From Anthoceros angustus (lineage: Eukaryota > Plantae > Anthocerotophyta), in the NCBI GenBank assembly GCA_010909165.1, contig MU008215.1:186001-250000 (forward strand): 64,000 nt of DNA. Direction: 5' to 3'. The notes under the pieces are model-generated. The model did not search any database and was not told the DNA's origin. It worked only from the letters and a program-made list of their open reading frames with translations. This document shows, one piece after another, positions 29,409 through 59,154 of the stretch; the stretch's first letter is position 1, and each line of letters begins with the position of its first letter. A program made the translations under genes and the position numbers.

Positions 29409-29854
29409 TCACCCCACCTTCTCTCGCTCACCGTCTCTCCCTCTTACGGAGAGTCCTCTCACGTTCGCAGAACGGCCCCAATGCCAATGCAGGCTTCCAC
29501 GTGTCACAGTAAACAGCCAATTCCATGGCTACTCCCAAGTCCATTCCCATTCTTAGCGCCCGTTGATGAGTGCTTTCCAAATAGTATTAAATCCGGTTCC
29601 GGTCGACGTTGTGATGCAAATGAGAATGGATCGCATGAATCGTCTGAAGTTGCAGACAGTTTGTACCTACTACACCGTGAAAGGAAGCGTGAATTTGCAT
29701 CCTTCGAAACCATGACGTGCGTTCCTTTGTAGGTAACCAATGCAGAACAGGCTGCTCATCCCTTCAGGGTGGTCTGGTCATACACAGCACCCGGGGATCC
29801 TGCCATAGCCTTTGTTAAAGTCATCTTCCGACGAGGGTCGACGGTCCTTGAACG

Positions 29855-32240
29855 ATGGCCGCAGTAAGGCAACCGGACCCGTTGTGGACCCAACAAATTG
29901 GAGCGTGTTCAGGGATCCTAGTAGGAACTCGGGCTCACCTCACCTCAGGGAGTTTACCCCTGGCAAACGACCAAGCCTCCAGGTGCGGCAGCGTAAGGAG
30001 CCCAGCACTTCCACTTGCGAAAAAATGTGTGGGTGGGGACGGGATTTTGAACGATGCGCGTCGCCAGGAGCAGGAGCACTTGTGGCAACAATTCTTTCTG
30101 GACCCTACCCTGTGGTGGGACAACAGACGAGATAAGAAGAGCTCCCGTTCGCCTGACTTCCGGCGAAAGGTGTCCGGCGAGGTGCTGTGGTTAAACAGCA
30201 TGCACAAGCCAGCTTGGGTTGATGAGAAGCTCGTTTCATTCGACATTCAGATGGGTCATGGTGTCTCTCCTTCCAAGTCGAGCTCTCCATCTAATCCTGA
30301 ACCTGGCACGCGTCCAGGATCGGAAATGGCCGTCGTTACGGCTGTAACCGTGATCGCTTTATGTAAGCAGGGGAAACTTTCTGAGGCCGTTGGAGCCCTG
30401 GAATCTCTGGCGCAGACAGACTCTGCTATTTCTCTGTCTCTGGTTTGCACTGTGCTCAAACTGTGTACAGCTAAGAAGGATTTGGTTGTGGGGCGACGAG
30501 TTCATGATCTCACTGTCAAACTTGGTTACGAGTCGATTGCATACGTGGGGAACCATATCTTGCGCATGTATGCATGTGGAGGCAGGCTAGAGGAGGCCAT
30601 GGATGTGTTCACCAGGGTAGGCAAACCAGATGTTTTCACGTGGTCTTCCATCATCTCTGCCCATGCTAAACATGGGAAACCTACTGAGGCAGTACAACTG
30701 TACCATGCAATGCGTAGGTCAGGAGTGAAGGCGGATGCTCACGTCTTTGTAGCTGCCCTTCAAGCTTGTGCATTTGCCGCCGACTTGGAATCTGGCAGAA
30801 AAGTGCACTGTGATGTGATGCAGAGTGACATCTCTACGAACTTGTTTGTTGGTAGCTGCCTGGTGGACATGTATGCAAAATGTGACAAAATGAAAGATGC
30901 ACGCCAGGTTTTTGATGGTATGAACACAAAAAATGTGGTGACATGGAATGCCCTGATAGCTGGGTATGCAAAATGTGGTGAACTGAAAGATGCACGCCAG
31001 GTTTTTGACAGCGTGAAGACAAAGAATGTGGTGACATGGAATGCCCTGATAGCTGGGTATGCCCAGCAAGGGCTGGGACATGAGGCGCTTGTTCTGTATG
31101 GACAAATGGAGCAGGAGGGCCTCATTTTGGCGGACCATTTTACTTTTGGTTGCCTTCTGAAGGCCTGTGCAAGCACTGGCGCCTTACAGAAGGGCAGGCA
31201 GCTGCACTCACAGATTGTCGAAAGAGGACTGCTGGATGACGTAGTGGTGGGCACCTGCCTTGTGGACATGTATGCAAAATGTGGTGAACTGGAAGATGCA
31301 CGCCAGGTTTTTGACAGCATGAACACAAAGAATGTGGTGACATGGACCGCCTGATTGCTGGGTATGGTACTTGTGATGAAGCTCACAAGGCACTAGCTTG
31401 TTTTGACGAGATGTTAGTTGCCGGCGTTCAGCCTAATGAGGCTACTTTTTCTTGCCTTCTAGTAGCATGCAGCCATGAGGGACTGGTGGATGAGGGGCGC
31501 AAGCACTTTGATTCCATGGTTGAAGAGCATGGCATCAAACCTACTATTGAGCATTACACCTGCATGATTGATCTTCTTGGGCGTGCTGGCCGTTTAGATG
31601 AGGCTGAGACGATGCTGTTATCGTTTTTGGGCGAAAGTGATGTTGTGGGCTTGACGTCTTTGTTGAGTGCTTGCAAAAGCCACGGGGATATTGAGAGGGC
31701 GTTGTGGTGTTTTGAAAGCATTGTTAGGCTGGACCCCCAGAGGGCGCCAGCCTATGTGCTCATGGCCAGTGCCTATGCAGATGCAGGTAGGTGGAGCGAT
31801 GTAGACAGGATTGAAACACAGAGAATGGTAGCAGGAGCTAACAAGAAACCTGCAGTGGCGACCATTGAGGTGAATAAGGTACATAGGTTCTGGTGGGAGA
31901 AAGGAGAGGATATTGCACTAAAGGTGGAGAGCACGAATGCACGTGTGAAGCAGGAAGGAGGCCATATACCTCACACAAAGTTGGTGTTGAAGCCACTGTC
32001 TGAGAAGGAAAAGGAAGATGCGCTTTGTGGGCATGCTGAGAAGCTAGCTCTGGCGTTTGGTCTCTTGAACACCTGAGTGGGACACCTCTGGTGGTAACGA
32101 AGAATCTACGCATGTGCAGTGACTGCCACAGTTCCACAGAGATCATGTCAAGGCTGGAACAGAGAGACATTGTTGTAAGGGATGGATACCGGGTGCATCG
32201 ATTCGCAGCCGGGTGTTGCAGTTGCAAAGGTCGACCGTGA
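29855..32240 (+). CDS. PPR gene 1: OSB-type PDF motif + PLS-class PPR array (~12 motifs) + E1/E2 + DYW:KP (GRP-type); candidate U-to-C organellar RNA editing factor
   Basis: ORFs 29855-31354 and 31342-32076 are joined by a 1-nt indel; further indels near 31885 and 32075; ends CSCKGRP*. Contains KKPAVATIEV, CGHAEKLALAFGLL and NLRMCSDCH. The true start may lie in an upstream exon. Confidence 0.9.
30065..30245 (+). other. PDF motif (as in the OSB1/OSB2-PTAC9 C-terminus) in gene 1
   Basis: EQEHLWQQFFLDPTLWWDNRRDKKSSRSPDFRRKVSGEVLWLNSMHKPAWVDEKL fits the recalled consensus LWQ.FF..P..WWDNR..K....PDF+.K..GE.LW....P.WV...L. Confidence 0.8.
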
Positions 32241-33899
32241 GAGCAAAGATAAACCAGCTAGTGCTCAAGTGTGTACCCCCTAAAATGTTGGTGTTTTTTC
32301 CCCTTGTGGTTGACTGTGCTGTTCTCCATCCTCTCCAAACTGAGACATGGACATGGATGCCGAGTACTGATCCACCTCCTAGCATGACTCAGATAATCGG
32401 CATCGAAAGAAATGTGTGTCTGGAATGAAGAAATTCCAGACTAATTTAATTATGGTGCGAGTAATGGCACTGGTGAAATAAGGTAGAAAGATGAAAAGTT
32501 GAAAAGGTAAAAAGCTAAGTTAGTAGCTACCCTGTTAAGATGATGCATGTGTTGCATGCTTCGTGCAATCTCTTGTTAGAAAGGAATTGCTCCAGCCACA
32601 AATGAAGAGCTGCCTAGAGAGGACTCTTAGTGATCAGTGGTCTGTAAGAATCCCTAGATTTAACAGCTGCCTAGTTAAGGTCAGGCTGCGGGATATATAA
32701 GGGCTAGAGCAAGGGCTTTGAGAAACAAGTTACAAGTAGGACTCACTCTTTGAGAGAGGGTGCAAGAAGCGCCTGCAAGCCTTGTGTTGAGAGAGCTGTG
32801 GAGAGCTAGTGAGCTTGTCATGGAATGCGCGAGTCCATGAGATAGCCGATTCCATCGTTGTATTCTTGCACAAAGAGTAGCACCTCGAGGAGGTGGCTGA
32901 GTCGTGGACGGGCGGGCTACTTGGAGCCTAGTGATGTGTTGTGAGGTTGAGTGCCGAGAATCGCAAGTCTCTTGTGGAGTGAATTGGCGAGGTCCTAGAC
33001 CGGAAACCACTTTGTCGCTTCCTTCCGGGCCGCATGAGAGGGTGTTACGTATGGGATATATAACCTCAAACACATCGGTCATTACCACACAAACCATATC
33101 AATTTCCTTCCTTGAAAGAGTGACATCTAGACATATCAGTACTTGGATGGGGTGTTATTGATCCCGAGCTATAAATTATAAATCATGCCCTTGTCTTCGT
33201 GGCGCTCTTGGTATGCCTATGGAATACCGATCTGGTCTCGCGGCATCCACATTTTTTTAGGGTTGTGAATAGAAGAATAGTCCCCGCACCTGGAACTATT
33301 TTGATGTCACGCATGACCACATCGGCTGCGCCCCTCGTGTCCCTTGTCAACCTACCCCATGATGCACGAAAAGATTCCACGATACACAAAAAACTTTTCT
33401 TCTCTCGGGTTTAGGGTTGCGTTAGGTCATTTATTGTCGGCCATTGCAACGCAATATGCCATCTCCGCACGAGCATCCACAATTTGTTAGGGTTGTTAGC
33501 GGTTGCGAGCACTACCGTGATACACCGCGCTTTGCGCCCATCATGACAGTAAAAGCGCTGCCTTTACGATCAGTTTAATGTTTATGATGCAACGCTTGGT
33601 CTTTGCAGTGGTTACATAGCACAACTATCCCAAAACAAGCTTATGCCAAGGACCAACAGAGAAGGGCTTCCAAAACAACAGATACATACAAGGCTTGCAC
33701 CCAAAAGCCTGCGTACAAGCGCATGCCCAAAGGGCCTCATCGACTATAACGCAGGTGATCCCAATCCACGCCCAAGAATGGCTTCACCGTCCCACCGGAG
33801 GTACGGGCAAAGGCCTCCCTGCTCCTCGCACTTACAATGTCACACAAGACATATCGGGAGGAAGTCCATGCCCTCCAAGCCCTTCGCATATGCATTGTC

Positions 33900-35690: not shown

Positions 35691-35738
35691 TACGGTGGTT
35701 ATCACGATCCCGGGCAGTGACGCACACCACCATGCTGT

Positions 35739-36001
35739 GTTATCCCACCACATGGTAGGGTCCAGAAAGAATTGTTGCCACAAGTGCTCGTGCTCCTGGC
35801 AACGACCATCGCTGGAAAATCCGTCCCGACCCACCCATTTGCTCGGAGGTGGAAGTGCTGAGTTCCTTAATCTGCTGCATCTGGAGGCTTGGTTGTCTAG
35901 GTCCCTAGAGTGATGGGGCGAGCTGGAGCCCCTCGTAGAATCCCTGTACCCTCACCCGTTTGCTGGGTCCACATTGCATCCGGTTGCCATACTGTGGCCA
36001 T
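35739..36001 (-). pseudogene. 5' fragment of a PDF-PPR gene, truncated inside the PDF motif
   Basis: MATVWQPDAMWTQ...QEHEHLWQQFFLDPTMWWDN, then unrelated sequence. Confidence 0.75.
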
Positions 36002-37402
36002 GTCACAGAAACTTCTTGCGCCCTGGAAGAAGTCGCCGCAATCGTCTCGCCGCTTTATCATCAGCCAGACGGCATAAGCTCGTCATCCCCAACTTCCAGT
36101 CCAGATATATGTATTGCGACTCAGCCATTCTACATAGTGTGTCTTATTCCTGAAGTAACGCTCAAGATCAGCAGCAGGAGCAGGGGGGCGGGCGAGTGCT
36201 CGCTGACACGGATGAGGAAACGTTATTGCGTTTTCCATCTTCCGCACTGTACAATCTAGTGTGTAGCTGTATCGGCAGGGTAACACACCACCCTGAACGA
36301 GAGTGCAGACAGTTTTATATTGGGTACCACATGGAAAAGATCAAAACCAAAGAATCCGGACATTAGAGTCTAACATGGTTGCGGAACACATGGCCTACAC
36401 ATTGACGGCAGATCTCTAGCTGGACCTTTGTCCACTACCATCGGTGAAAATTGCAGGGTTGCTTTACACTGATGCACCTGAGTGCTCAGTTGCAAGGTCG
36501 GATGAGCGGGAGCCCTCCAGAGTCTGAGGTTGCCACATCGGTTATGCTGTTACGCTACACCGCTCGCAGTGTATGTAACATCAGCCCTGCTTGTCAGGCC
36601 CTGATACTATAAGCCAAAGGTAGAACCTTGGGACACTTCCCCTGATGGGCGTGCGGCATGAGCGTGCAAACCAGGACAGCCTCATACACAGCGCCATTGA
36701 AATGCTGTGTGGAGCCTTGCACTGCCTCGCAGTAAGTGACTCTTGGGGGCCCCGATTGCAAGTGCATGCCACCAGACATGGGCATGAGCGCCTGATTTTG
36801 AAGCCTCTGCTACCACTGGGCTCCCTTCCTTGGCATCTGAGGCCTCCAAATTCTGCTATGTGCATCCATTGCTCTTGGTTCATGGTTGTTCAGGTGCAGC
36901 CTGGGGTCAAGCCACCCTTCTTCCGCTTGCCATGGGTGAGCCAGCCACGCCATGCCTCCTTCATGTGGCCGCATTGTGATGGGCAAGGTGGCTTGCACAC
37001 TGCACACCATGCGTGGAAGGCGCTCCTTGGCTGCCCGCTTTGTGGGTTTAGGGTTTACCATGTGCAACAATCAGGAGCAGTGTATTCAAATGGAGCGACA
37101 CGCCTTGCACGATATGATTGGGTGGGCTGGACATCGCGACACCTGTGGCGTGTTGGGTTCACAAGAAATTGAGTGGGCTATGTCAAGTGTTGCATTCCAC
37201 AGCCAGTGTTCAAAATCCTGAAGTACTTCCTGGGCGCACTTGAAATTGTGTGCAAAGGGGGCTTCACATGCTGTGTGAGCAAGATAGGGGCCTATGCTCC
37301 CACAGCAAGATAGGGGCCTATGCTTTGTGTGGGTGCAGCCTTGGATGGAAGGCTGCACGCCCACTGGATCATGATCCCGAGTGACGCACACCACCATGCT
37401 GT

Positions 37403-37675
37403 GTTATCCCACCACATGGTAGGGTCCAGAAAGAATTGTTGCCACAAGTGCTCGTGCTCCTGGCAACGACCATCGCTGGAAAATCCGTCCCGACCCACCC
37501 ATTTGCTCGGAGGTGGAAGTGCTGAGTTCCTTAATCTGCTGCATCTGGAGGCTTGGTTGTCTCCCAGCGGTTGCCTCCCTAGAGTGATGAGGCGAGCTGG
37601 AGCTCCTCGTAGAATCCCTGTACCCTCACCCGTTTGCTGGGTCCACATTGCATCCGGTTGCCATACTGTGGCCAT
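37403..37675 (-). pseudogene. Second copy of the truncated PDF-PPR 5' fragment
   Basis: ORF 37292-37675: MATVWQPDAMW...HLWQQFFLDPTMWWDN, with the same breakpoint as the first copy. Confidence 0.75.
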
Positions 37676-38492
37676 GTCACAGAAACTTCTTGCGCCCTGG
37701 AAGATCGCGCAGTCTCGCTGCTTTATCAGCCAGACGGCATAAGCTCGTCATCCCCAACTTCCAGTCCAGATATATGTATTGCGACTCAGCCATTCTACAT
37801 AGTGTGTCTTATTCCTGAAGTAACGCTCAAGATCAGCAGCAGGAGCAGGGGGGCGGGCGAGTGCTCGCTGACACGGATGAGGAAACGTTAGCTGCGTTTT
37901 CCATCTTCCGCACTGTACCTAGTCTAGTGTGTAGCTAGTATCGGCAGGGTAACCACACCACCCTGAACGAGAGTGCAGACAGTTTTATATTGGGTACCCA
38001 CATGTGGCAAAAGATCACCAAAACCAAAGAATCCGGACATTAGAGTCTAACATGGTTGCGGAACACATGGCCTACACATTGACGGCTAAGAGATCTCTAG
38101 CTGGACGTTTTTTCTTTGTCCACTACCATCGGTGCAAAAAACCTTGCCCACCCGGGTTGCTTTACACTGATGCACTCCGAGTGCTCAATAGTTTCCCGGC
38201 AAGGTCGGATGAGCGGGAGCTCCTCCCAGAGTCTGAGGTTGCCACACTGCGGCCATGCTTGTTACATACACCGCTCGCAGTGGTGTATGTAACATCAGCC
38301 CTGCTTGTCAGGCCCTGTATACTATAAGCCAAAGGTAGCAACCTTGGGACACTTGTCTGGCCCTGTATAATATGAGCCAAAGGTAGCAACCTTGGGACAC
38401 TCACGCGGATCAGCGCTGGCCATCCATGTGCATGTGTGTATCAACCAATGTTCTCCTCCGCCCAATCTTGGGCGCTGACTACATCACTATTT

Positions 38493-41400
38493 TCACGGTC
38501 GACCTTTACAACTGCAAGTACCACCTGCGAATCGATGCACACGGTACCCATCTCTCACAACAATGTCTCTCTGTTCGAGCCTTGACATGATCTCCGTGGA
38601 ACTGTGACAGTCACTGCACATGCGTAGATTCTTTGTTACCACCAGAGGTGTCCCTCTGGGAGTGTTCAAGAGACCAAACGCCAGGGCTAGCTTCTCAGCA
38701 TGCCCACAAAGCGCATTTTCCTTTTCCTTCTCAGACACTGGCTTCAACACTAACTTTGTGTGAGGTACGTGGCCTCCTTCCTGCTTCAGACGTGCATTCG
38801 TGCTCTTGACCTTCAACGCAATATCCTCTCTTCTTTCTCCCACCGCAAATGTATGTACCTGCTTCATCACCTCAATGGTCGCCACTGCAGGTTTCTTGTT
38901 AGCTCCTGCTGCCATTCTCTGGGTTTCAACCCTGTCTACATCCGCCCACCTCCCTGCATCTGCGTAGGCATTGGCCATGAGCACATACGCAGGCGCCCAT
39001 TGAGGGTCCAGCCCAACAATGCTTTCGAAACACCGGATAGCCCTCACAATATCCCCGTGACTTTTGCAAGCATTCAACAAAGACGTCAAGCCTACCACAT
39101 CCCTTTGGCCCTTACATGACAATAGCATCTTCTCTGCCTCATCTAAATGGCCTGCACGTCCAAGAAGATCAATGCAATAATGTAATAGTAGGTAGATGCT
39201 GATGCCATGTTCAGCCATGGAATCAAAGTGCTTGCGACCTCATCCACCAGTCCCTCATGACTGCATGCTACTAGAAGGCAGGTAAAAGTAGCATCATTAG
39301 GCTGAACACCAGCTAACATCTCCTCAAAACAAGCTAGTGCCTTGTGACCATCATCACAAGCACCATACCCAGATATCAGGGCATTCCATGTCACCACATC
39401 CTTTGTGCCAAGCTGTCAAAAACCGGCGTGCAGCTTCACCACATTTTGCATACATGTCCACCAGGCAGTTGCCCAACACTACGTTATCCAGCAGTCCTCT
39501 TTCAACAATCTGTGAGTGCAGCTGCCTGCCCTTCTGTAAGGCACCAGTGCTTGCACAGGCCTTCAGAAGGCAAGCAAAAGTAACATGGTCAGCCAAACCA
39601 GGCCCTCCTGCTCCATTGCTCCTTGCTCAACCCAGCAATCACATTCCATGTCACCACAGTGCCCATGTGCTGTGCATACACCAGCTACCCAGATATCAGG
39701 GCATCCATGTCACCACATCCTTTGTTCATGCTGTCAAAAACCTGGCGTGCATCTTCCAGTTCACCACATTTTGCATACATGTCCACCAGGCAGTCAACAC
39801 TACGTCATCCAGCAGTCCTCTTGACAATCTGTGAGTGCAGCTGCCTGCCCTTCTGTAAGGCACCAGTGCTTGCACAGGCCTTCAGAAGGCAAGCAAAAGT
39901 AACATGGTCAGCCAAAATGAGGCCCTCCTCCATTTGTCCATAACAACAAGCGCCTCTTGGCGTCCTTGCTGTGCATACCCAGCAATCAGGGCAGTCCATG
40001 TCACCACATTCTTGTGGCCAAGCTGTCAAAAACCTGGCATCTTCCAGTTCACCACATTTTGCATACATGTCCACCAGGCAGGTGCCCACCACTACGTTAT
40101 CCAGCAGTCCTCTTCGACAATCAGTGAGTGCAGCTGCCTGCCCTTCTGTAAGGCACCAGTGCTTGCACAGGCCTTCAGAAGGCAAGCAATAACATGGTAG
40201 CCAAAAGGCCCTTGCTCCATTTGTCCATACACAACAAGCGCCTCATGTCCGAGTCCTTGCTGTGCATACCCAGATATCAGGGCATTCCATGTCACCACAT
40301 CCTTTGTGGCCATGCTGTCAAAACCTGGCGTGCATCTTCAATTCACCACATTTTGCATACATGTCCACCAGGCCCCCAACACTACGTCATCCAGCAGTCC
40401 TCTTCGACAATCTGTGAGTGCAGTTGCCTGCCCTTCTGTAAGGCACCAGTGCTTGCACAGGCCTTCAGAAGGCAAAAAAGTAACATGGTCAGCCAAAATC
40501 AGGCCCTCCTGCTCCATTTGTCCATACACAACAAGTGCCATGTCAGCCCTTGCTGCATCCAGCAAGGGCATGTCACCACATCCTTTGCCCAAACCTGTGC
40601 ATGTTCACACATTTTGCATACCCAGCAATCAGGGCATTCCATGTCACCACATCCTTTGTGGCTGCTGTCAAAAACCTGGCGTGCATCTTCAGTTCCACAT
40701 TTTGCATACATGTCCACCAGGCAGTGCCCACCACTACGTTATCCAGCAGTCCTCTTCACAATCAGTGAGTGCAGCTGCCTGCCCTTCTGCAAGGCACCAG
40801 TGCTTGCACAGGCCTTCAGAAGGCAAGTAACATGGTTAGCCAAAATCAGCCCTCCTGCTCCATTTGTCCATACAAACAAGCCTCTTGGCCGAGCCTTGCT
40901 GTGCATACCCAGATATCAGGGCATTCCATGTCACCACATCCTTTGTGGCCATGCTGTCAAAAACCTGGCGTGCATCTTCAGTTCGCCACATTTTGCATAC
41001 ATGTCCACCAGGCAGTTGCCAACAAACAAGTTAGTAGGAATGTGCAACACATCAGTGCACTTTTCTGCCAGATTCCAAGTGGCAAATGCACAAGCTTGAA
41101 GGGCAGCTACAAAGACGTGAGCATCCGCCTTCACTCCTGACCTACACATGACATTGTATAGTCGTATGGCCTCCTTGGGTTTCCCATGCTTGGCGTATGC
41201 AGAGATTATGGAAAACCAGACGAAGGCATCTGGTTTGCGCACCCTGGTGAACACATCCATGGCCTCCTGCAGCCTACCTCCACGTGCATACATGCGCAAG
41301 ATTTGGTTCCCCATGTGTGCATTGGACTCGTACCCAAGTTTGACAGTGAGATCATGAACTCGTCGCCCACAACCAAATCCTTCTTAGCTGTACACAGTTT

Positions 41401-41987
41401 CAGCACAGTGTAAAACAGAGACTGAGATGCAGAGTCTGTCTGCGCCAGAGATTCCAGGGCTCCAACGGCCTCAGAAAGCTTCCTGCTGACATAACGTGCT
41501 CACGGTTACAGCAACGACGCCCATTTCCCTGCACGCCTGCCAGGTTCAGGCTTATCCGGAGAGCTGGACTTGGAAGGAGAGGCACCATTACCCATCTGCA
41601 TATCCAAGGAAACGAGCTGCTCATCAACCCAAGCTGGCTTGAACATGTTGTTTAACCACAGGACCGCCGGACCCCGCCGGAAGTCAGGCGAACGGGAGCT
41701 CTTCTTATCTCGTCTGTTGTCCCACCACATGGTAGGGTCCAGAAAAATTGCCACAAGTGCTCCTGCTCCAGGCAACGAGCATCGCTAGAAAAGCCGTCCC
41801 CACCACATTTTGTCGGAAGTGGAAGTGCTGGGCTCCTTTCGCAGCTGCACTTGGAGGCTCTGTTTGCCAGGGGTTGACTCCCTACGACGAGGTGAGCGGG
41901 AGCTCCTGAAAGAATCCCTGTGTATGTACACACACCAATTGCAATGTGTTGGGTCGACAACGAGTCCGGTTGCCATACTGTGGCCAT
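38493..41987 (-). CDS. PPR gene 2: one PDF motif + long PLS array (five ASTGALQKG-type triplets) + E1/E2 + DYW:KP (GRP); many indels in the array
   Basis: Start MATVWQPDS (41987); PDF at ~41598-41770; L-motif marker AGGCACCAGTGCTTGCACAGG at ~39540, 39859, 40151, 40441 and 40792; C-terminal ORF 38493-39218 has KKPAVATIEV, HAEK, CSDC and CSCKGRP. Confidence 0.8.
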
Positions 41988-42534
41988 CGTTCAGGGACCG
42001 CTGCCTGAGGATGAGTCTCACAAGAGACCATGGCAGGATGGCATAGTCAGATTGTGATGGATTACGCCCAGGACAGGGCTGCCCTGTCCCAGGACGGAAC
42101 AATTTGCTTGCAGGCTGGTGAAGATTTGTGGAAGGTACAGGGGCAACGAGGATACTGGAGACCAAAGAGGTGGTGGTAGACCTATCCTATCCGACTTGGG
42201 AAGAAAGTTACATATGGAAGAGAAGGTGAACGATCATGGCGGCTATGTTGTCCGCTGCCCATGGTGTTTTGACAAATTTCTATTAGATGTCATAGCCGCC
42301 GCCAAGGTGGAATGGCAGCTTGCTAGCCACTTTGATGCTGTTTGCGGTGGCCGTGTGGAGGAGACGAAATTGAGAGTGCAGAATTTGTTCAGACTTGGGC
42401 TGTTTGGGCGCAGCGCAGAGAAGTTAGAAGATGTAGAGCGGAAGGGGAAGGGCTGGGGAAGGGGGTCGTATCAATCTAAAAGACACGCTGGCTATTTTCA
42501 ATGCAGAGTCGACTCGTGCTACCTGTTTGCGGCT

Positions 42535-45500
42535 ATGCATGTTCTTAGGCGCCTGGCCTGGACTGGCCAGAGGGTGGTTGCGGCCGTGTCCTTCGCCGCG
42601 ACGGCCCTCTGGCCAGGGATGAACTGGCTCAGCGCTGGATCCGTCATAGCTTCCCGACTGGCTGTGCCCTTCACGGCTGGAGCTTGCTCATCCCGCCGTG
42701 ACACATACACATACTCAGGGATTCTACTAGGAGCTCCCGCTCACCTCATCTTAGGAAGTCAACCCCTGGCAAACAAAGCCTCCAGGTGCAGCAGTGTGAG
42801 CCCAGCATTCACTTCCAGATGTGTGGGTAGGGACGGCTTCTCTAGCGATGCTGGCCGTTGCCAGGAGCTAAAGCAGAAGCAGAAGCAGAAGCACTTGTGG
42901 CAACAATTTTGTCTGGACCCTACCCTGTGGTGGGACAACAGACGAGATAAGAAGAGCTCCCGTTGCCCTGACCTCCGGCATAAGGGGTCCGGCGAGGGGC
43001 TGTGGTTAAACAACATGTTTAAGTAAGCTTGGGTTGATGAGAAGCTCGTTTCCTTGGATACGCACAGGAGTCACGGCGCCTTTCCTTCCGACTCCAGCTC
43101 TCGAGATAATCCTGAACCTGGGAGTCGTGCAGAATCGGGCCCAGGTGCAAGCAGTGACTTCCCAGCACATCCGAGAAAATGGTGGGGACGGATTTAACGA
43201 TGATCGTCGCCAGGAGCAGGAGCACTTGTGGCAATTTTTCTGGACCTACCCTGTGGTGGGACAACAGACGACAAGAAGAGCTCCCGTTCGCCTGACTTCC
43301 GGCGTAAGGGGTCCGGTGAGGTCCAGTGGTTACACAACATGTTCAAGCCAGCTTGGGTTGATGAGAAGCTCGTTTCCTTGGATACGCACAGGAGTCACGG
43401 CGCCTTTCCTTCCGACTCCAGCTCTCGAGATAATCCTGAACCTGGGAGTCGTGCAGAATCGGGCTTCAGGTGCAGCAGTGTAAGGAGCCCAGCACATCCC
43501 AGAAAATGTCTGGCTGGGGACGGGATTTCCACCCATGCTCGTCGCCAGGAGCAGGAGCACTTGTGGCAACAATTTTTTCTGGAGCCTACCATGTGGTGGG
43601 ACAACAGACGAAGTAAGAAGAGCTCCAGTTCGCCTGACTTCCGGCGTAAGGGGTCCGGTGAGGTCCAGTGGTTACACAACATGTTCAAGCCGGTTTGGGT
43701 TGATGAGCAGCTCATGTCCATGGATATGCAGATGGGACATGGTGCCTCCTTCCAGTCCAGCTCCGGATAAGCCTGAACCTGGGAGGCGTGCAGGATCGGA
43801 AATGGGCGTCGTGCTAACCGTGAGCACGTTATGTCAGCAGGGAAGCTTTCTGAGGCCGTTGGAGCCCTGGAATCTCTGGCGCACATGGACTCAGCTATTG
43901 ATCTGTCCCTGGTTTGCACTGTGCTGAAACTGTGTACAGCTAAGAAGGATTTGGCTGTGGGGCGACGGGTTCATGATCTCACTGTCAAACTTGGGTACGA
44001 GTCGAATGCACGAACCATATCTTGCGCATGTATGCTTGTGGGGGCAGCCTAGAGGAGGCCATGGATGTGCTCACCAGGGTGGGGAAACCAGATGCCTTCA
44101 TGTGGTCTTCCATAATCTCTGCACACGCAAAGCATGGGAAACCCAATGAGGCAGTACAATTGTACCATGAGATGCGTAGGTCAGGAGTGAAGGCGGATGC
44201 TCACGTCTTTGTAGCTGCCCTTCAAGCTTGTGCATTGGCTGCCGACTTGGAATCTGGCAGAACAGTGCACCGTGATGTGTTGCACGGTGGCATTCCGACT
44301 GACTTATTTGTTGACAACTGCCTGGTGGACATGTATGCAAAATGTGGCAAAATGAAAGACGCACGCCAGGTTTTTGACAGCATGGCCACAAAGGATGTGG
44401 TCACATGGAATGCCCTCATATCTGGGTATGCAAAATGTGGTGAACTGGAAGATGCACACCAGGTTTTTGACAGCATGAACACAAAGGATGTGGTGACGTG
44501 GAATGCCCTGATAGCTGGTATGCAGCAAGGACTCGCCAGAGGCGCTTGTTGTGTGTATGGACAAATGGAGCAGGAGGGCCAGATTTTGGCTGACCGTGCT
44601 ACTTTTGGTTGCCTTCTGAAGGCCTGTGCAAGCACTGGAGCTTTACAAAAGGGCAGGCAGCTGCACTCACAGATTGTCGAAAGAGGACTGCTGGATGACG
44701 TGGTTGTGGGCACCTGCCTTGTGGACATGTATGCAAAATGTGGTGAACTGGAAGATGCACGCCAGGTTTTTGACAGCATGACACAAAGAATGTGGTGACA
44801 TGGAATGCCCTGATAGCTGGTATGCACAGCAAGGACTCGTACCAGAGGCGCTTGTTGTGTATGGACGAATGGAGCAGGAGGGCCAGATTTTGGCTGACCG
44901 TGCTACTTTTGGTTGCCTTCTGAAGGCCTGTGCAAGCACTGGAGCTTTACAAAAGGGCAGGCAGCTGCACTCACAGATTGTCGAAAGAGGACTGCTGGAT
45001 GACGTGGTTGTGGGCACCTGCCTTGTGGACATGTATGCAAAATGTGGTGAACTGGAAGATGCACGCCAGGTTTTTGACAGCATGGCCACAAAGGATGTGG
45101 TCACATGGAATGCCCTTATCTGGGTATGCAAAATGTGGTGAACTGGAAGATGCACACCAGGTTTTTGACAGCATGAACACAAAGGATGTGGTGACGTGGA
45201 ATGCCCTGATAGCTGGATATGCACAGCAAGGACTCGTACCAGAGGCGCTTGTTGTGTATGGACGAATGGAGCAGGAGGGCCAGATTTTGGCTGACCGTGC
45301 TACTTTTGGTTGCCTTCTGAAGGCCTGTGCAAGCACTGGAGCTTTACAAAAGGGCAGGCAGCTGCACTCACAGATTGTCGAAAGAGAACTGCTGGATGAC
45401 GTGTGGTGGGCACCTGCCTGGTGGACATGTATGCAAAATGTGGTGAACTGGAAGATGCACGCCAGGTTTTTGACATGACACAAAGAATGTGGTGACATGG

Positions 45501-46397
45501 ACGCCCTGATATCTGGTTATGGTACTTGTGATGAAGGTCTCAAGGCACTAGCTTGTTTTGAGGAGATGTTAGTTGCGGTATTCAGCCTGATGCTACTTTA
45601 CTTGCCTTCTAGTAGCATGCAGTCATGCAGGACTAGTCCAGGAGGGTCGCAAGCACTTCGATTCCATATCTGAACAGCATGGCATCAAACCTACTATTGA
45701 GCATTACACCTGCATGATTGATCTTCTTGGGCTTGCGGGCCATTTAGATGAGGCAGAGAAGATGCTATTATCATATGAGGGCAAAAGTCATGTTGTGGGC
45801 TTGATGACTTTGTTGAATGCCTGCAAAAGTCACGGGGATACAGAGAGAGCGGTGTGGTGTTTTGAAAGCTTTGTTAGGCTGGAACCCCTGCAGGCGCCCG
45901 CCCATGTGCTCATGGCCAATGCCTATGCAGATGCAGGTCGTTGGACCGATGTAGACAGGATTGAAACACTGAGAATGGTAGCAGGAGCTAACAAGAAACC
46001 GGCAGAGGGGACCATCGAGGTGAATAAGGAGGTACACAGATTTCTGGTGGGAGAAAGAAGAGAAGATATTGCATTTAAGGTGGAGAGCACGAATGCACGT
46101 CTGAAGCAGGAAGGAGGCCATGTACCTCACACAAAGTTGGTGTTGAAGCCACTGTGTGAGAAGGAAAAGGAAGATGTGTTCTGTGGGCATGTTGAGAAAC
46201 TAGCTCTGGCATTTGGTCTCTTGAACACTCCGAGTGGGACACCTCTGGTGGTGACGAAGAATCTACGCATGTGCAGTGACTGCCACAGTTCCACAGAGAT
46301 CATGTCAAGGCTTGAAAAGAGAGACATTGTTGTAAGGGATGGGTACCGTTTGCATCGATTCGCAAATGGCTGTTGCAGTTGTAAGGGTCGGCCTTGA
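42535..46397 (+). CDS. PPR gene 3: transit-peptide-like N-terminus + three PDF motifs + PLS array + E1/E2 + DYW:KP (GRP, HVE variant); in-frame TAA in PDF1, possibly a pseudogene
   Basis: MHVLRRLAWTGQRVVAAVSF at 42535; PDFs at ~42890-43060, 43210-43385 and 43545-43725; PPR array 43810-45750; DYW ORF 45714-46397 ends CSCKGRP; TAA at 43024-43026. Confidence 0.8.
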
Positions 46398-47269
46398 GAA
46401 CAAGTTTTCAAGTGTGTACGCCAGAGAATACTGCCTTCGTCTTGGGGGGATGAATGGGCTTTATTAACTCCATGCCTTTCCGAACTGGGACGGAGACATT
46501 CCGGTAGATCGCTAGCACTGACCCACCTCTCGTCGTGACAGAAAAGAATAGAATCGTATGAATCTCTTGTGTAATATTCCGCTAGCTAATTGATCAATTA
46601 ATTTTTTTATCCAGGAAAAGTAACCTTTTCTTGGGGGGTCTAAACTAAGCGACTGAGCATTAGGTACTTAACATACCAGTCTCCGGCGGAAATTTGGAAA
46701 CCACAATTTTACTTTAAGCTTGGATGGCCTCCCGCCAAAATAGGCTTCTTGGGCAGCAACAAATAGTACCTCAGGGCAATTGAGCATTTCTATGGCAAAC
46801 AACCCCGACAAATCGTCACCAGCTTGCAGGAGTCCGATTCCCTTGGGAGAGTCTCTGAAGTGGAGACTTATGCAAGGGCTAAGGCGGCATTGTTTGCTTT
46901 GCTGACTATGGATCAGCAGGGCAGCGGGCACCCCAGAATTTTGTGCATGAGCCACGTGAAAACTTGACTCACCGAGAGCCACAAAATCTGCACCACATTC
47001 CAGCTAAAGTGGTCTAAAGTTCTGAAGGTGCCGATTCTCTAATTCAATTGCAATGAGTCAACGTGATTACATCCATATCTCTCTACTCTAATCTTCTACT
47101 AACACATCTTGAAGTTCGAAAAGATTTAAGAAATAATTTGGTGGTGCTGTTGCTGGTATTCCATCAAGACGATCTTCATACACAACCTGAGCATGAAGTG
47201 CTGTATGGTAGAATAGGATGTCAGGTCTATCAAAGGTACCCCATTTGCAAATCCTACTCTAGAGCATAC

Positions 47270-47510
47270 TGATGAAAATCACGCCTTGCTCTTAGCAAAA
47301 GATGTTTTCATTGCTTATGAAATTGAAAGTACAAAGCCTTTATATAGGCTGGGTGGTTACAACCATAAGGTGGTTGTAACCATAAGTAGTTCTAACCTCT
47401 AAGTGGTTGTAACAACTACTTAATAAACTACCTAAAGCCCTAAGAACTAAATTAATTAATAGCCTTAGGTGCCCTAGTGAAGAGTGCCCTAAATAGGTCA
47501 TATTTCATCA
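47270..47510 (-). repeat. Copia 3' LTR
   Basis: Near-identical to 53632-53874; 8-bp inverted termini. Confidence 0.9.
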
Positions 47511-47826
47511 CTCCCTCACTATGAACTAGGTGTGAAGAATCGCTTCAAAATGAGACTAAAAGGTTTAGCTCCCACTAGATTGAAAGTTATCGCTAACTAA
47601 GAAAACAATTAAAACTGGCTTAAGTTACATTTAATCTGTATTAATTTAATTAAAAAGAATTGCCAAAAACTTAATCAGAAATGGTAAAACTAAGTAAGGT
47701 AAAATAATAACAAGGTTAAATATAACTTTGGGTAAAAGGTTGAGAACATTTAATGATAACCTCATGGGTCATGTGGATGCCGGTTTGTATGCCATGGGGA
47801 GGACATACGATTTATACCTCATACGT

Positions 47827-51600: not shown

Positions 51601-53631
51601 GTCAGTGAGGACACAAGTTTCGCACCAAGGTAGGTGTTCAACCTTGCAAGGCAAGGGTTCTATATATTCCCTCTAGACATTTGGATTAATTTTGACTATT
51701 AGGATGACCAATCTACAATGCCAAAGCATGGTTTGGGTAGGTGTCAATGTTTGGGAGGCAACATTATGAATGGGTGGCTCTACTTGCATAATCTATAGAG
51801 GCCCATCTTCTCAAGTATTGTGTTCTATCACTTAAAAAGAGAGAAACAAGATATAAAGGATCACGCAATGTTTTTGAAAGACTTGCAAAGATACTAGATT
51901 TTGCACATGAAGGAACATGGAGGACTTGATGAAGATGAAGATGACCCGAATCACATCACTTGAATACAATGAACCAACCCGCTATGGGAAGGTTGTGATC
52001 ATCACCCGCAGATGTCCTGGTCCTGTGGGTGTAAGACTCAAAGAGTCTTGTTGTAACATATGTGATGTTGCTCCACCCTGTGAGGTATTGGGGCGGAAGG
52101 AGAGAGGATGAAGGCAGATTTGAGGAAGATGTTGATGAAGATTTCGCAATGTTAGCTGTGGGCCTCCTCTAGGTTCCCATTCTTCTTTACTCCTTTTCCA
52201 TGTGATTTGGGATTCGCACCAATTACAAATTCCCTTTTGTTACCTCGAAGGTGAAGAAGATCTCGCCATATTTGTTTGTGGAATATGGTCAGGGAAGAGA
52301 ACTGCCGCGCCTCTTCCTACCCTTTGTGAATACATCGCTTGTTGGCTCAGTGTCACCGCTGACTCCTCCTCAATCAATGCTCCAATAAGTTCGCGATCCG
52401 GCTTAATGTCTGGATCTTCATCCGCTTTTCGACCAACAGCATTTTGAGTTGTAATGAAAGCCCTATAAGAAGGTGGCAATGAAGATAAGAGAAAAGCAAC
52501 TCTGGACAAGGTGAGCTTCATATTGAGATCGCCAATAGAAATGCATTGATATGATGTTCGATGGTCATCCTTCATTGAGAGGTTGAGTTACGGAAGGCTC
52601 ATCATACTCATTACATCTCTTGAGAGAATTGAGCAAGGTGAGTCCACATATCCTGAGGTCTTTGCATTGTCTCACCATTGTCCAGAAGTCCACGAAATAA
52701 ATCTTGAGCTTCTCTGGCATCCCGGAAGGTTGAAGTGTGCTCAAATCGTGGGGCCGAATTGATCCATCGACTATGCCCAGGTCTCGCCAAAGCTCATCGA
52801 TTCGCCAAACATCATAATCCTTCCATTGAATCTATCTTCTCTTAAACTCACCATAATGATAATGCAAAGGTCGATTATCATTTGGTGGGGATCATTGTGT
52901 GTTAGGAAGCTTGTTCTTCATTATATCACCCAGGTGATTTAGAGGACTAGGCTGCGCCTTTCTTCTTCTCTATTGCATGCTCGAAACTCCTCTGCAATAA
53001 CTTGTGATGATGATGAGAGCTCTCAAATCTAAGTTATCAACCTTAGAGAGATAGACAATTTTGTCCTTAATTCAGATAATTCTCCTTAAGATCAAGATGT
53101 TGGATTCTAAGAGTGTGTTCTATCTTATCAATTTTATGAGTTTCTCTTGTCTGCACTAGAAGATAGGAGTAATACCGATTCAAATTTGGGATATGTTGGA
53201 GCTAATTCTAATGCTTGACGTGAATTGACTAAAACTTCTAGCAAATCACGCCTAGCTAGCTTGATAAACTTCCCTTGATCGGTTTAGAAATTAGAATAGA
53301 TGCAATGAAGTTAGCAGAAGAGGTTTCTTCTATCTCTGCAATGATGTGTAGACTTCTATTTCTAATGTTCTTATTCCTAACTTGTTCTTGTTGTCTTGGC
53401 AATCTCTTCCAATTCTAGCCTTCTAAGGAAAACATCCATGGAGGAGGACAAGGAATTAGTGCATAAAAGCATTGTTAGAAAAGAAAAATGTTTAAAGAAG
53501 AAAACATAAAAGAGGCAATTCTAAGATGCACAATCCATCTAGCAAGGTGCTAGATGGGAAAGTGCCTCCTAGATAAGCTCCTTAGATGCTAAAAGCTGCG
53601 CACGCACAATGGAGAGCAATGCTCGATACCA

Positions 53632-53874
53632 TGATGAAAATCACTCCTTGCTCTTAGCAAAGATGTTTGCATTGATTATAAATAGAAAGTACAAAGCCTT
53701 TATATAGGCTAGGTGGTTATAACCATAAGGTGGTTGTAACCATAAGTAGTTCTAACCTCTAGGTGGTTGTAACAACTAACTACTTAATAAACTACCTAAA
53801 GCCCTAAGAACTAAATTAATTAATAGTCTTAGGTGCCCTAGTGAAGAGTGCCCTAAATAGGGTATATTTCATCA
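53632..53874 (-). repeat. Copia 5' LTR
   Basis: Followed on the minus strand by the iMet PBS. Confidence 0.9.
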
Positions 53875-54646
53875 CATACTACATCCCACGTATTGTTGTG
53901 AATATATCCTATGGTTTTGGGCCTTAAAGAACGTTCCCCAAAAGACACAATCTGGGTAGGGGTATCTGGATAGGGGTATAGCATCCATTATTCTAAATAG
54001 ATATCAGCACTCTCATAGGAATGCTCGCAGAAATGCTATGTATCAATGCTATCATACTACTTGAGTTGCCTTGGCCAAGTCAACCTTTGGATTTCTTACT
54101 GCTTTTGCCATGGCCATAGTTGCTAATGTTATCACTACACCGTGACTGTAGAGATGGGAGGTCCTTCAGCGAATTGAGAGGGGCGCATCTCCTCATCCTG
54201 CTCGCGGTAAAAATGGTCATGGGAAGAATCGTTTCTGATCCGATAGATGCTATAATGATGCATGCCTTTCAGGAACAATATTTTGCGCCGACTTTACTTG
54301 TTGCGTGAAGGGGTTGGCCGTTGCCAACGATTGTTGCTTTGCCTTTCAAGAAACGTGAAACCCGTTTTCCACTTCTTCAATGTTGGATAGAGTACCGGAA
54401 TGTGAGAGAGATACAACACATTGAGAGCAAGAAAGCAGTGGCTATCATTTGCGAGGTTGGCAACTATTGGTGTCTGTGGACAAGGGAAGAATGGTAGACT
54501 CCCCTTAGGAAGGTAATATTAGTGTGTTTTTTGTTTTCTTTAGTGTTCGGTGTGAGGAATAAGGCGGAAAAAGGGGAAATAAGGCTAAACGCTAAGCACA
54601 AGATGCTTAATCACAAAGTTCTTGTAAATGTGTGTCCATTTGGCCT

Positions 54647-55110
54647 CACAAAGAGTGGTGACATGGAGTGCCTTGATAGCCGTGTATCTTGAGCAAATTT
54701 CCTAGATCATACCGTGTGGTAAAAGGAGGAATGCTTCGCTATTCTTCAAGCTTGTGCCTTGGTAACTCTCTGCGCCGGCTTGGGTTGATGAATAGCTTTT
54801 TGTCTACAAATGCAGATGGGTCATGGTGCCTCTCCTTCCAAGCCGAGCCCTCCGAATAGCTTGGAGCCTTGTAGGCATGTAGGATCGGGAATGAGCATCA
54901 TAGCAATTGGGATCATGGGTGCATTCAGACTCATCAAGCTGAACTGTGGGTAATCATGTCACTTATTTCCTGGTTTTTGAATGCATGCAAGTGCCAATGT
55001 TGGAGGTTCGTATGAGGGAAAGTAGCTTCATCTGAGACTGAGGATAAGGATCAATATTCTAATGTGGTTGTCGGCAACTGTCTGGTGGACATGTATGCAG
55101 AGCTTGAAAG
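54647..55110 (+). pseudogene. Scrambled remnants of a PDF-PPR paralog
   Basis: VVTWSALIA (~54655-54681), LQAC (~54742), post-PDF linker WVDE.L..QMGHGASPSK (54781-54910), NVVVGNCLVDMYA (~55060-55100); the pieces are not in gene order. Confidence 0.55.
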
Positions 55111-55646
55111 GTGCTCCAAGCTCCAAGAAGGAGAAGTTACCCCACTTTCAGAGCTGCTCGTGCTGCCGGTCAAGTGGCTTTCTTTTGTGGGGATGAATTG
55201 ATGGTGTTTAGCCCTCGTCCACGCATTTTCATGAACATTGTTGATTGATTGATCTTATTTGAATTTTACCTTTGCATTCAGACCATTTTACCACAATCTA
55301 TTTCAATCCCATGTCGGAAATCCGTCCTTAGTGGACTTCAATAAAATTCTTCACCTTCTTCTTCCATAAAGAAGAACCCTAAGCAATGGATAACAACATC
55401 CAAACACCATAGGCCAAGTTGTGTCACACAACGTTTTCTGCCGCATACGACCCGGCTTGTGATGGTCTGGCATATAATACAAGGGAATCTTAAGATGCCG
55501 AGGCATCTAAGTGTACAATCCAGGCGCAAAACAATTCACAAGTCGCCTGCTGACGAGATCATATTCCATACGACCGACAAACCATAACAAATTTTTTTGT
55601 GAGTGTTTTGTTAGCCTCATCATCTTCCAGCAGCGATCCCTGAAGG

Positions 55647-58600
55647 ATGGCTAAAGTATGGCAACCGGACCCGTTGTGGACCCAACAAATTGGTGTGCGT
55701 ACAGCAATTCTACGAGGAGCTCCCGCTTACCTCACGTCAGGGAGTCACCTGGCAAACAACCAATCCTTGAGGTGGTGCAGCATTGTAAGGAGCTCAGCAA
55801 TTCCACTTCCGATGAAGGTTGTGGGTGGGGACGGGTTTTGCAGCGATGGTCGTGGCCAGGAGCAGGAGCACTTGTGGCAACAATTTTTTCTGGAACCTAC
55901 CATGTGGTGGGACAACAGACGCGATACGAAGCGCTCCCGTTCGCCTCACTTCCGGCGCAAGGGGTCCGGCGAGGTCCTGTGGTTAGACAACCTGTTCAAG
56001 CCAGCTTGGGTTGATGAGCAGCTGGTTTCCTTGGATATGCAGATGGGTCAAGGTGCCTCTCCTTCTAAGTCGAGCTCTCCGGATATGGTCGAAGGATCCG
56101 TAATGGGCTCCATATGCTGCAGTGTAAGGAACCCAGCACTTGCACTTCCGGGAAAATGTGTGGGTGGGGACGGGTTTTCCAGCGATGGTCGTCGCCAAGA
56201 GCAGGAGCACTTGTGGCAACAATTTTTTCTGGACCCCGCAATGTGGTGGGACAACAGACGAGATAAGAAAACCTCCCGTTCGCCTGACTTCCGGCGTAAG
56301 GGGTCCGGCGAGGTTCTGTGGTTAAACAACCTGTTCAAGCCAGCTTGGGTTGATGAGCAGCTCGTTTCCTTGGATATGCAGATGGGTCAAGGTGCCTCTC
56401 CTTCCATGTCGAGCTCTGCGCATAAGTCTGAACCTGGCAGGCGTGAAGGATCGGAAATGGGCGTCGTGACGACGGCTGGAACTGTGAGCATGTTATGTGA
56501 GCAGGGGAAGCTTTCTGAGGCTGTTGGAGCCTTGGAATCTCTGGCACAGACTGATTGCGCCGTTTCTCAGTCTGTGTTTTACACAGTGCTGAAGCTTTGT
56601 ACAGCTAAGAAGGATTTGGTTGTGGGTCGACGAGTTCATGATCTCACTGTCAAACTTGGATACGAGTCGAATGCATACTTGGGGAACCATATCTTGCGCA
56701 TGTATGCTTCTGGAGGTAGGCTCGAGGAGGCCATGGATGTGTTCACCAGGTGGCAAACCAGATGCCTTCATGTGGTCTTCCATCATCTCTGCCCATGCTA
56801 AACATGGGAAACCTGTTGAGGCCGTACAACTGTACCACGAGATGCGGAGGTCGGGAGTGAAGGCGGATGCTTACGTATTTATAGCTGCACTTCAAGCTTG
56901 TGCATTTGCTGCTGACTTGGAATCTGGCAGAAAAGTGCACTGTGATGTGTTGCGCAGTGGCATTCCCACGAACTTGTTTGTGGGCAACTGCCTCGTGGAC
57001 ATGTATGCAAAATGCGGGGAACTGAAAGATGCCAGGTTTTTGACAGCATGGCCACAAAGGATGTGGTGACATGGAATGCCCTGATATCTGGGTATGCACA
57101 GCAAGGACTCGGACAGGAGGCTTGTATGGACATGGAGCAAAAGAGGGCCTGATTTTGGCTGACCATGTTACTTTTGCTTGCCTTCTGAAGGCCTGTGGAA
57201 GCTGGTGCCTTACAGAAGGGCAGGCAGCTGCACTCACAGATTGTTGAAAGAGGACTGCTGGATAACGTATTGGTGGGCAACTGCCTGGTGGACATGTATG
57301 CAAAATGTGGTGAACTGGAAGATGCACGCCAGGTTTTTGACAGCATGGCCACAAAGGATGTGGTGACATGGAAGCTGATTGCTGGGTATGAGCAAGGGCT
57401 CGGCCAAGAGGCTTGTTGTGTATGGACAAATGGAGCAGGAGGCCTGATGGCTAACCATGTTACTTTTGCTTGCCTTCTGAAGGCCTGTGCAAGGCACTGG
57501 TGCCTTACAGAAGGGCAGGCAGCTGCACTCACAGATTGTCAAAGAGGACTGCTGGATATAGTGTTCAACTGCCTGGACATGACATGTAAAATGTGGTGAA
57601 CTGGAAGATGCACGCCAGGTTTTTGACAGCTTGGCCTCAAAAGGATGTGGTGACATGGAATGCCCTGATTGCTGGGTATGCACCAAGGACGCCAAGAGGC
57701 GCTTGTTGTGTATGGACAAATGGAGCAGGAGGCCTCATTTTGGCTGACCATGTTACTTTTGCTTGCCTTCTGAAGGCCTGTGGCACTGGTGCCTTACAGA
57801 AGGGCAGGCAGCTGCACTCACAGATTGTGGAAAGAGGACTGCTGGATAATGTAGTGGGCAACTGCCTGGTGGACATGTATGCAAAATGTGGTGAACTGGA
57901 AGATGCACGCCAGGTTTTTGACAGCATGAACACAAAGATGTGGTGACATGGAATGCCCTGATTGCTGGGTATGCACAGCAAGGACTCGCCAAGAGGCGCT
58001 TGTTGTGTATGGACAAATGGAGCAGGAGGCCTCATTTTGGCTGACCATGTTACTTTTGCTTGCCTTCTGAAGGCCTGTGAAGCACTGGTGCCTTACAGAA
58101 GGGCAGGCAGCTGCACTCACAGATTGTGGAAAGAGGACTGCTGGATAATGTAGTGTGGGCAACTGCCTGGTGGACATGTATGCAAAATGTGGTGAACTGG
58201 AAGATGCACGCCAGGTTTTTGACAGCATGAACAAAGAATGTGGTGACATGGAATGCCATGATTTCTGGGTATGGTACTTGTGATGACGGTCAAAGAGCTC
58301 TAGCTTGTTTTGACGAGATGTTAGCTGCTGGCATTCAGCCTGATGGGACCACTTTTTCTTGCCTGCTAGTAGCATGCAGTCATGAGGGTCTTGTCCACGA
58401 GGGTCGCAAGCACTTTGATTCCATGGCTGAACAGCATGGCATCAAACCTACTACTGAGCATTACAATTGCATGATTGATCTTCTTGGGCGTGCAGGCCAT
58501 TTAGATGAGGCTGAGAATATGTTATTGTCATGTGAGGAAGAAATTAATGTTGTAGGCTTGAGGTCTTTGTTGAATGCCTGTAAAAGTCACGGGGATATAG

Positions 58601-59154
58601 AGAGATCAATGTGGTGTTTTGAAAGCATTGTTAGGCTGGACCCCCAGGAGGCGACCGCATATGTGCTCATGGCCAATGCCTACGCAGATGCAGGTAGGTG
58701 GAGCGATGTAGACAGAATTGAAAGACAGAGACGAGCAGCAGGAGCTAACAAGAAACCTGCAGTGGCGACCGTCGAGGTGAATACGCAGGTACATAGCTTT
58801 GTGGTCGGAGAAAGGAGAGAGGATATTGTGGTTAAGGTAGAGAGTACGAATGCACGTGTGAAGCATGAAGGAGGCCATATACCTCACACAAAGTTGGTGT
58901 TGAAGCCACTGAGTGAAAAGGAAAAGGAAGATGTGCTTTGTGGGCATGCCGAGAAACTGGCTCTGGCATTTGGCCTCTTGAACACCCCGAGTGGGGCACC
59001 TCTGGTGGTAACGAAGAATCTACGCATGTGCAGTGACTGCCACAGTTCCACGGAGATCATGTCAAGGCTTGAGCAGAGAGACATCGTTGTAAGGGATGGG
59101 TACCGTCTGCATCGATTCTCATCTGGTTCTTGCAGTTGCAAAGGTCGACCGTGA
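55647..59154 (+). CDS. PPR gene 4: two PDF motifs + PLS array (four ASTGALQKG-type triplets) + E1/E2 + DYW:KP (GRP); many indels in the array
   Basis: ORF 55647-56801 has two LWQQFF..WWDNRRD..SP(H/D)FRRKGSGEVLW motifs; ORF 58240-59154 has P2-L2-S2-E1-E2, KKPAVATVEV, HAEK, CSDC and CSCKGRP. Confidence 0.85.

Follow-up and report, generated by a model that had tools for sequence, protein, structure and literature searches.

The stretch of hornwort DNA considered here (Anthoceros angustus, assembly GCA_010909165.1, contig MU008215.1, positions 186,001 to 250,000), referred to below as the window and 64,000 nucleotides long, contains a cluster of four decayed paralogs and three gene fragments of a hornwort-type (GRP subtype) PLS-PPR-E-DYW:KP family of RNA-editing factors. 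The four copies are intron-less, lie within 29.8-61 kb and share 84-90% DNA identity; beside them are two 5' fragments on the minus strand and one 3' fragment on the plus strand. These genes carry a motif ahead of the PPR array, which an original prediction, made from the letters alone, had assigned to the PDF domain of OSB1 and OSB2, proteins of the organelles that bind single-stranded DNA. On the strength of a profile search and a predicted fold, the motif is a genuine OSB-type PDF domain, and its fusion to the PPR editor is real. The copies in the window are most likely relics of a recently expanded, largely decayed gene family.

In its ancestral form the gene was a single exon read in one frame, encoding a disordered presequence of about 60-70 residues, at least one PDF, some 20 residues of disordered Ser/Pro-rich linker and, behind these, the PPR array and the deaminase. 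Two open reading frames (ORFs) retain the junction: in copy 1 (29855-31354) the frame opens at the start codon, spans the PDF and continues into the PPR array, and in copy 4 (55647-56801) it takes in the presequence, both PDFs and the initial PPRs. The model predicted for the 499-residue copy 1 ORF shows disorder in the presequence (residues 1-61) and in the linker (135-154), where the predicted local distance difference test score (pLDDT) falls below 50; over the PDF (62-133) and the solenoid of the PPR array the score is high and the model confident. In the open pieces Pfam detects PPRs (PF01535/PF13041), PF20431 (E_motif) and PF14432 (DYW_deaminase), with E-values down to 4e-34, and direct reading of the translated C-terminal domains reveals KKPAVA(T) in place of the PG box, CGHAEK (the HAE motif), CSDCH and a KGRP end. 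A KP box, an HAE active-site motif and a C-terminal GRP characterise the GRP subgroup of hornwort DYW:KP proteins (PMC9478123), and by these criteria the deaminases are therefore of the DYW:KP type, GRP subgroup. The closest named relative of the C-terminal part is a transcript of another hornwort, Nothoceros aenigmaticus (60% identity). The in-frame attachment of a PDF before a PLS-PPR-E-DYW:KP editor, as originally proposed, is thus upheld by the ORFs, the Pfam domains and the KP/HAE/GRP reading alike.

Features of the PDF-PPR-DYW:KP cluster in the window (positions counted from the first letter of the window)
Feature	Position	Strand	Content and state
Copy 1	29855..32236	+	presequence, one PDF, PLS-PPR array, E motifs, DYW:KP ending GRP; from ORFs, Pfam and paralog alignment
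PDF copy 1	30065..30250	+	intact; every invariant and nearly invariant family position present
5' fragment A	35716..36225	-	presequence and first half of PDF, ending after WWDN
5' fragment B	37380..37890	-	near-identical duplicate of fragment A
Copy 2	38493..42039	-	pseudogene; one damaged PDF, expanded PPR array, DYW:KP; many frameshifts and stops
PPR tandem repeats, copy 2	39686..40539		
PDF copy 2	41598..41770	-	frameshift before WWDN; short internal deletion after PDFRR
Copy 3	about 42715..46403	+	pseudogene; three PDF units, PPR array, DYW:KP; several frameshifts and stops
PDF 3a	42895..43060	+	in-frame stop; PDL instead of PDF
PDF 3b	about 43181..43400	+	first half frameshifted
PDF 3c	43546..43731	+	intact
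PPR tandem repeats, copy 3	44426..45116		
Copy 4	55634..59163	+	pseudogene; two PDFs, PPR array frameshifted many times, DYW:KP ending GRP
PDF 4a	55857..56042	+	in frame; PHF (His at the family-invariant Asp)
PDF 4b	56196..56381	+	intact
PPR tandem repeats, copy 4	56975..58273		
3' fragment	60083..60974	+	isolated; last PPRs, E and DYW:KP of a further paralog

A regular-expression scan of all six frames recovered the motif at each location where it had been predicted. All seven PDF copies in the four genes could thus be located, but only four are intact and in frame, the other three being damaged by a stop, a frameshift, or a frameshift and a deletion. The PDF of copy 1 retains all five invariant and all eight nearly invariant columns. 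The number of PDFs per paralog varies from 1 to 3, and the pair in copy 4 derives from one in-frame tandem duplication of 339 bp (113 codons) spanning 55776-56424.

The identity of the motif was addressed with a profile of 62 columns, built by aligning the four intact copies and compared by HMMER with 1.84 billion representative proteins. There were 591 matches at E<=1e-3 and 144 at E<=1e-10, far above chance. A Populus nigra protein annotated as 'protein OSB1, mitochondrial-like' (P0148) matched with an E-value of 1.7e-23 in two C-terminal stretches, and proteins bearing several PDFs reached values down to 1e-56. Among the matches listed, most have one to several units of the motif, placed towards the C-terminus; P0143, P0142 and P0148 bear the Pfam SSB domain, and several of the Pfam-scanned matches combine an SSB/OB domain with C-terminal PDF repeats. 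The alignments reveal, column by column, a residue signature common to the PDFs of the window and of the OSB proteins, LW..F..NP..WWDNR..K..P..PDF[KR]HK..GE.LWL..P.WV. Pfam left the motif region unmatched in the window ORFs and in OSB proteins alike, and a word-indexed protein search with the motif region alone likewise gave no match. Three proteins, P0122 (Kingdonia uniflora, 1160 aa), P0121 (ENA, 719 aa) and P0129 (908 aa), contain 9-13 PDF stretches each, far above the 1-5 reported for OSBs.

The predicted structure points in the same direction. An AlphaFold2 model of the PDF, based on 145 PDF sequences, attains a pLDDT of 92.5 and comprises a helix, a small beta sheet and a second helix. 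Against Swiss-Prot models, Foldseek places this fold on residues 183-243 of A. thaliana OSB1 (template modelling (TM) score 0.84, root-mean-square deviation 1.2, 47% identity), and the only significant matches there are OSB1, OSB2, OSB3 and OSB4, each at its C-terminal PDF region, the models being predictions on both sides of the comparison. Of the significant matches in the AlphaFold cluster library, those with a name are again OSB proteins, and the remainder are mostly uncharacterised. Weaker PDF-like folds occur in A0A7S2HFR7 (253 aa) and A0A3M1NXI7 (171 aa), at 30-31% identity with E-values of 4e-3 and 2e-2, and the source organisms of these two proteins might lie outside the land plants. 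The PDF forms a domain in its own right, about 60 residues long, in which aromatic and basic residues are invariant or nearly so; the predicted homology with the OSB PDF is sustained by both the OSB1-like profile match and the fold, and no result obtained contradicts this identity. That the resemblance reflects chance, a mis-joined gene model or an assembly chimera is hardly conceivable, given E-values down to 1e-56 for proteins with several PDFs and of 1e-23 for an annotated OSB1, a fold match with a TM score of 0.84, and the recurrence of the same junction in four window paralogs, in annotated genomes of several species and in one assembled transcript; on these three grounds it was ruled out.

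The state of the genes is another matter. The original prediction spoke of full-length genes and of a family of editing factors at this locus, an image of sound, working genes that does not survive inspection of the reading frames, as in this assembly all four copies are broken. Copy 1, the least damaged, is distributed over three frames as a result of apparent 1-nt deletions near 31350 (GCCCTG -> GCCTG) and 32072, leaving ORFs at 29855-31354 and 31342-32076, with the DYW domain continuing in another frame past 32076. Relative to copy 1, gaps of a length that is not a multiple of three number 11 in copy 3, 12 in copy 4 and 24 in copy 2, a few of these counts stemming from copy 1's own deletions. 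The gaps in copies 2-4 measure 1, 2, 4, 7 or 8 nt and fall mostly outside homopolymer runs, and the translations are interrupted by many stops, with frameshifts and stops in the PPR array; the last 304 codons of copy 4 (PPR, E and DYW:KP ending in GRP) are open. Indels of 2, 4, 7 and 8 nt outside homopolymers, together with stops, are not an error pattern, and the damage in copies 2-4 is therefore decay, not assembly noise.

It could be argued that the frameshifts are assembly errors and that the window holds working genes, which might apply to copy 1 alone. In copy 1 just two 1-nt deletions are involved, one of them in a CCC run, its three segments lack in-frame stops, and some read-derived contigs carry an extra base at 31349 and at 32072. 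Such contigs may, nevertheless, come from paralogs, since 40-110 contigs overlap each site, while copies 2-4 with their longer indels and stops speak against the same explanation for the cluster, and an exact-product look-up with the two long window ORFs returned no identical record. We regard assembly errors in otherwise working genes as rather unlikely; most likely the window genes are non-functional relics, to which copy 1 may be an exception. The same contigs, drawn from DNA and putative RNA runs of four related organisms and including thousands from paralogs, give a measure of the family's size. Over 29600-32400, single sites in the PDF and PPR regions are covered by 40-110 distinct contigs at >=90% identity. 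Several related organisms accordingly contain tens of PDF-bearing paralogs (at least 90% identity), that is, a large family.

The history of the cluster is also recorded in its fragments and repeats. Both 5' fragments, which were absent from the original list, have their PDF cut right after WWDN; they are 98-100% identical and spaced by 1664-1674 bp, and such identity at a spacing of about 1665 bp implies a recent local duplication. When 29797-32249 is compared with the other copies, similarity begins about 60 bp before the start codon and stops about 10 bp past the stop codon, so that the copied unit is essentially coding sequence alone; no poly(A) tail was seen 3' of the stop codon of copy 1. 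The tandem repeats in the PPR arrays of copies 2, 3 and 4 have periods of 290-304 bp (about 290 bp in copy 2), corresponding to about one P-L-S triplet, and are present in 2.3-4.4 copies with 87-96% identity, each of these arrays having expanded independently. Elsewhere in the window (1-29000 and 46400-55600) long ORFs are scarce, and Pfam found no match in five other ORFs of 175-288 aa. GC and AT skew are both strongly positive at 12-28 kb, and the GC content drops to 0.41-0.43 in the interval separating copies 3 and 4.

Even in decay the paralogs retain traces of past selection. Pairwise ratios of nonsynonymous to synonymous substitution rates (dN/dS) between paralogs, excluding two segment sets read in the wrong frame (the 60-kb fragment and the linker of copy 3c), and resting on few substitutions (7-17 per class), were 0.19-0.48 for the PDF, 0.27-0.41 for the E-DYW part and 0.20 for the PPRs that come first; the presequence, by contrast, stood at 1.0 and the linker at 2.2. 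This suggests that before the copies died the PDF was under protein-level constraint like the catalytic and RNA-reading parts.

The fusion is not confined to this locus. Among the 150 best profile matches ten are proteins from other sources with an N-terminal PDF and PPRs, the co-occurrence in other land plants for which the original prediction had proposed to search. The most informative is P0202, from a hornwort-like sample, an intact protein of 753 aa encoded by a single ORF on a 9-kb contig, with a PDF, PPRs, E and a DYW:KP domain ending in GGRP; its aligned N-terminal part (end of the presequence, PDF, linker and PPRs) is 49% identical to copy 1. Annotated counterparts occur in Selaginella moellendorffii (XP_024517303), Ceratopteris richardii (KAH7429238 and KAH7415344) and Adiantum capillus-veneris (KAI5076972 and KAI5061374), Diphasiastrum complanatum contributes a partial protein (KAJ7231026), and in a partial assembled transcript of Pteridium aquilinum the PDF and PPRs are on one mRNA. 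The fern and lycophyte proteins are annotated only as PPR or hypothetical proteins. The association with DYW:KP enzymes that the original prediction had read into the fusion is not general, as the full-length fern and Selaginella PDF-PPR proteins lack the DYW domain and P0288, a close GRP-type relative, possesses a presequence and no PDF. Judged from these protein sequences, the fusion is not specific to U-to-C (DYW:KP) editors. In a tree of 145 PDF domains just 9 of 141 branches are supported, and the PPR-linked PDFs group together more than under shuffled labels, requiring 7 changes compared with 12.6; one origin is possible, the resolution being poor. P0168 (Coptis chinensis KAF9616283, 1526 aa) carries three PDF units before a kinesin motor domain, which may reflect either a spread of the PDF to other kinds of protein by shuffling or a merged gene model.

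The PDF-PPR fusion is old and, in keeping with the original claim, apparently undescribed. No paper in the searchable literature, a coverage outside which Gerke et al. 2020 (New Phytol) falls, links PDF or OSB with PPR or DYW. A 2026 study of OSB evolution (PMC13393729) never mentions PPR, and a kingdom-wide 2026 survey of editing factors and the domains fused to them (PMC13386178) never mentions OSB or PDF. The Pfam copy that we searched returned no PDF model, which would explain how an accessory domain was overlooked in annotated public proteins; both evolutionary surveys and the design of PPR editors depend on domain calls of the Pfam type.

One question then is what a PDF might do at the head of an RNA editor. 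A PPR tract and the RNA that it binds run parallel, the N-terminus of the tract lying at the 5' side, and the PDF would therefore contact single-stranded RNA 5' of the recognition element. We consider it probable that the best explanation overall is a decayed PDF-PPR-DYW:KP cluster from an organelle-targeted family, in which the PDF acted as a single-strand grip. On this proposal the domain would hang by a flexible tether from the N-terminal end of the PPR tract and grip single-stranded nucleic acid without regard to sequence, and the Trp, Phe, Arg and Lys positions conserved in the alignment of PDF sequences fit contacts with single-stranded nucleic acid. A hold on single-stranded RNA immediately 5' of the recognition element could strengthen binding or prevent the site from folding, an accessory function whose outcome would resemble that of the MORF helpers of seed plants.

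The main alternative is that the PDF tethers the editor to single-stranded DNA in the organelle nucleoid, at transcription bubbles, R-loops or replication and recombination intermediates, which would link editing to transcription or enrich the enzyme around nascent RNA. The sole reported activity of a PDF is indeed single-stranded DNA binding, for which the PDF of OSB1 is sufficient (PMC6963530; PMC13393729), and the flexible linker separates the domain from the RNA-reading tract. The N-terminal site beside the 5' end of the bound RNA suits RNA contact equally, and variation of the PDF number between 1 and 3 among paralogs is neutral; we hold nucleoid tethering to be unlikely. Still less probable, in our estimation, is a protein-contact or oligomerisation module through which an editor might, for instance, pair with an OSB protein or with another editor that bears a PDF. 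Tetramers are reported for OSB2 (PMC6963530) and many proteins contain tandem PDF repeats, but nothing links tetramerisation to the PDF, and conserved aromatic and basic residues (W, F, R, K) of an exposed type are typical of contacts with single-stranded nucleic acid.

Several considerations weigh against a single-strand grip on RNA. The documented activity of the OSB PDF concerns single-stranded DNA, not RNA, and we infer the role of the PDF in PPR proteins from sequences and models. Searches of the PDB with Foldseek and VIA-align found no solved relative of the fold (best Z 3.7), and there is therefore no mechanism to borrow from a structure. The existence of P0288 means that the PDF is dispensable for at least some editors. 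In this assembly all four window copies are frame-disrupted, and the few substitutions noted above limit the weight of the dN/dS values.

More speculatively, the PDF could be a general single-strand grip added to many PLS-PPR editors of seedless land plants, a built-in helper doing the job of MORFs, although we would not expect this wide generalisation to hold. If it did, both RNA and DNA would be ligands of the PDF, and OSB proteins, too, may act on RNA; in a bolder variant, the PDF would dock editors on R-loops or transcription bubbles and editing would be co-transcriptional. Programmable RNA base editors are being developed from PPR editing factors, and the DYW:KP proteins of hornworts, lycophytes and ferns serve in this way as the source of U-to-C editors. 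U-to-C editing has been shown for designer KP proteins (PMC9478123). Should the PDF improve RNA capture or localisation, it would be a candidate add-on for synthetic editors and a clue to the very heavy editing loads of seedless plants. The fusion also broadens the role known for a domain that has hitherto been considered only in connection with the maintenance of organellar DNA. To this the window, with its mostly dead copies, contributes little further.

How do these proteins compare with known systems? OSB1-OSB4 of A. thaliana (Q9SX99, Q8GXH3, Q8GWJ4, Q9FYJ2) share with the window a PDF of about 60 residues with the same signature, the same predicted helix-sheet-helix fold (TM 0.70-0.84, 38-47% identity) and an organisation in tandem repeats of 1-3 units. 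In OSB proteins, however, the PDF is C-terminal and follows an OB-fold or SSB-like domain, whereas in the window it is N-terminal and precedes the PPR array; as Pfam detects no SSB/OB domain in the window ORFs, the window proteins are not OSB proteins. Hornwort DYW:KP editing factors of the GRP subgroup were reportedly described by Gerke et al. 2020 and Gutmann et al. 2020, the former (New Phytol) being said to be the primary description of the GRP/DRH proteins. Like the window copies, the GRP-subgroup factors, as summarised in PMC9478123, contain PLS-PPRs, E motifs, a KP box, HAE, CxxC and a C-terminal GRP; that summary makes no mention of an N-terminal PDF, and the window copies differ in being frame-disrupted.

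The PDF-PPR proteins of Selaginella, Ceratopteris, Adiantum and Diphasiastrum resemble the window copies in having one or two N-terminal PDF units followed by a PLS-type PPR array, with just 29-41% identity to copy 1 in the aligned N-terminal parts. The full-length models, which are those from Selaginella and Ceratopteris and KAI5076972 from Adiantum, stop behind the PPR/E region without DYW, unlike the window copies with their DYW:KP domains; Adiantum KAI5061374 and Diphasiastrum KAJ7231026 are shorter, and in these possibly incomplete models DYW is not seen. The MORF/RIP helpers of seed-plant editosomes offer a possible analogy of function only, as accessory parts that aid RNA binding by PLS-PPR editors, and we claim no homology. 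MORFs are separate polypeptides of unrelated fold, whereas in the window the PDF is built into the chain of the editor itself.

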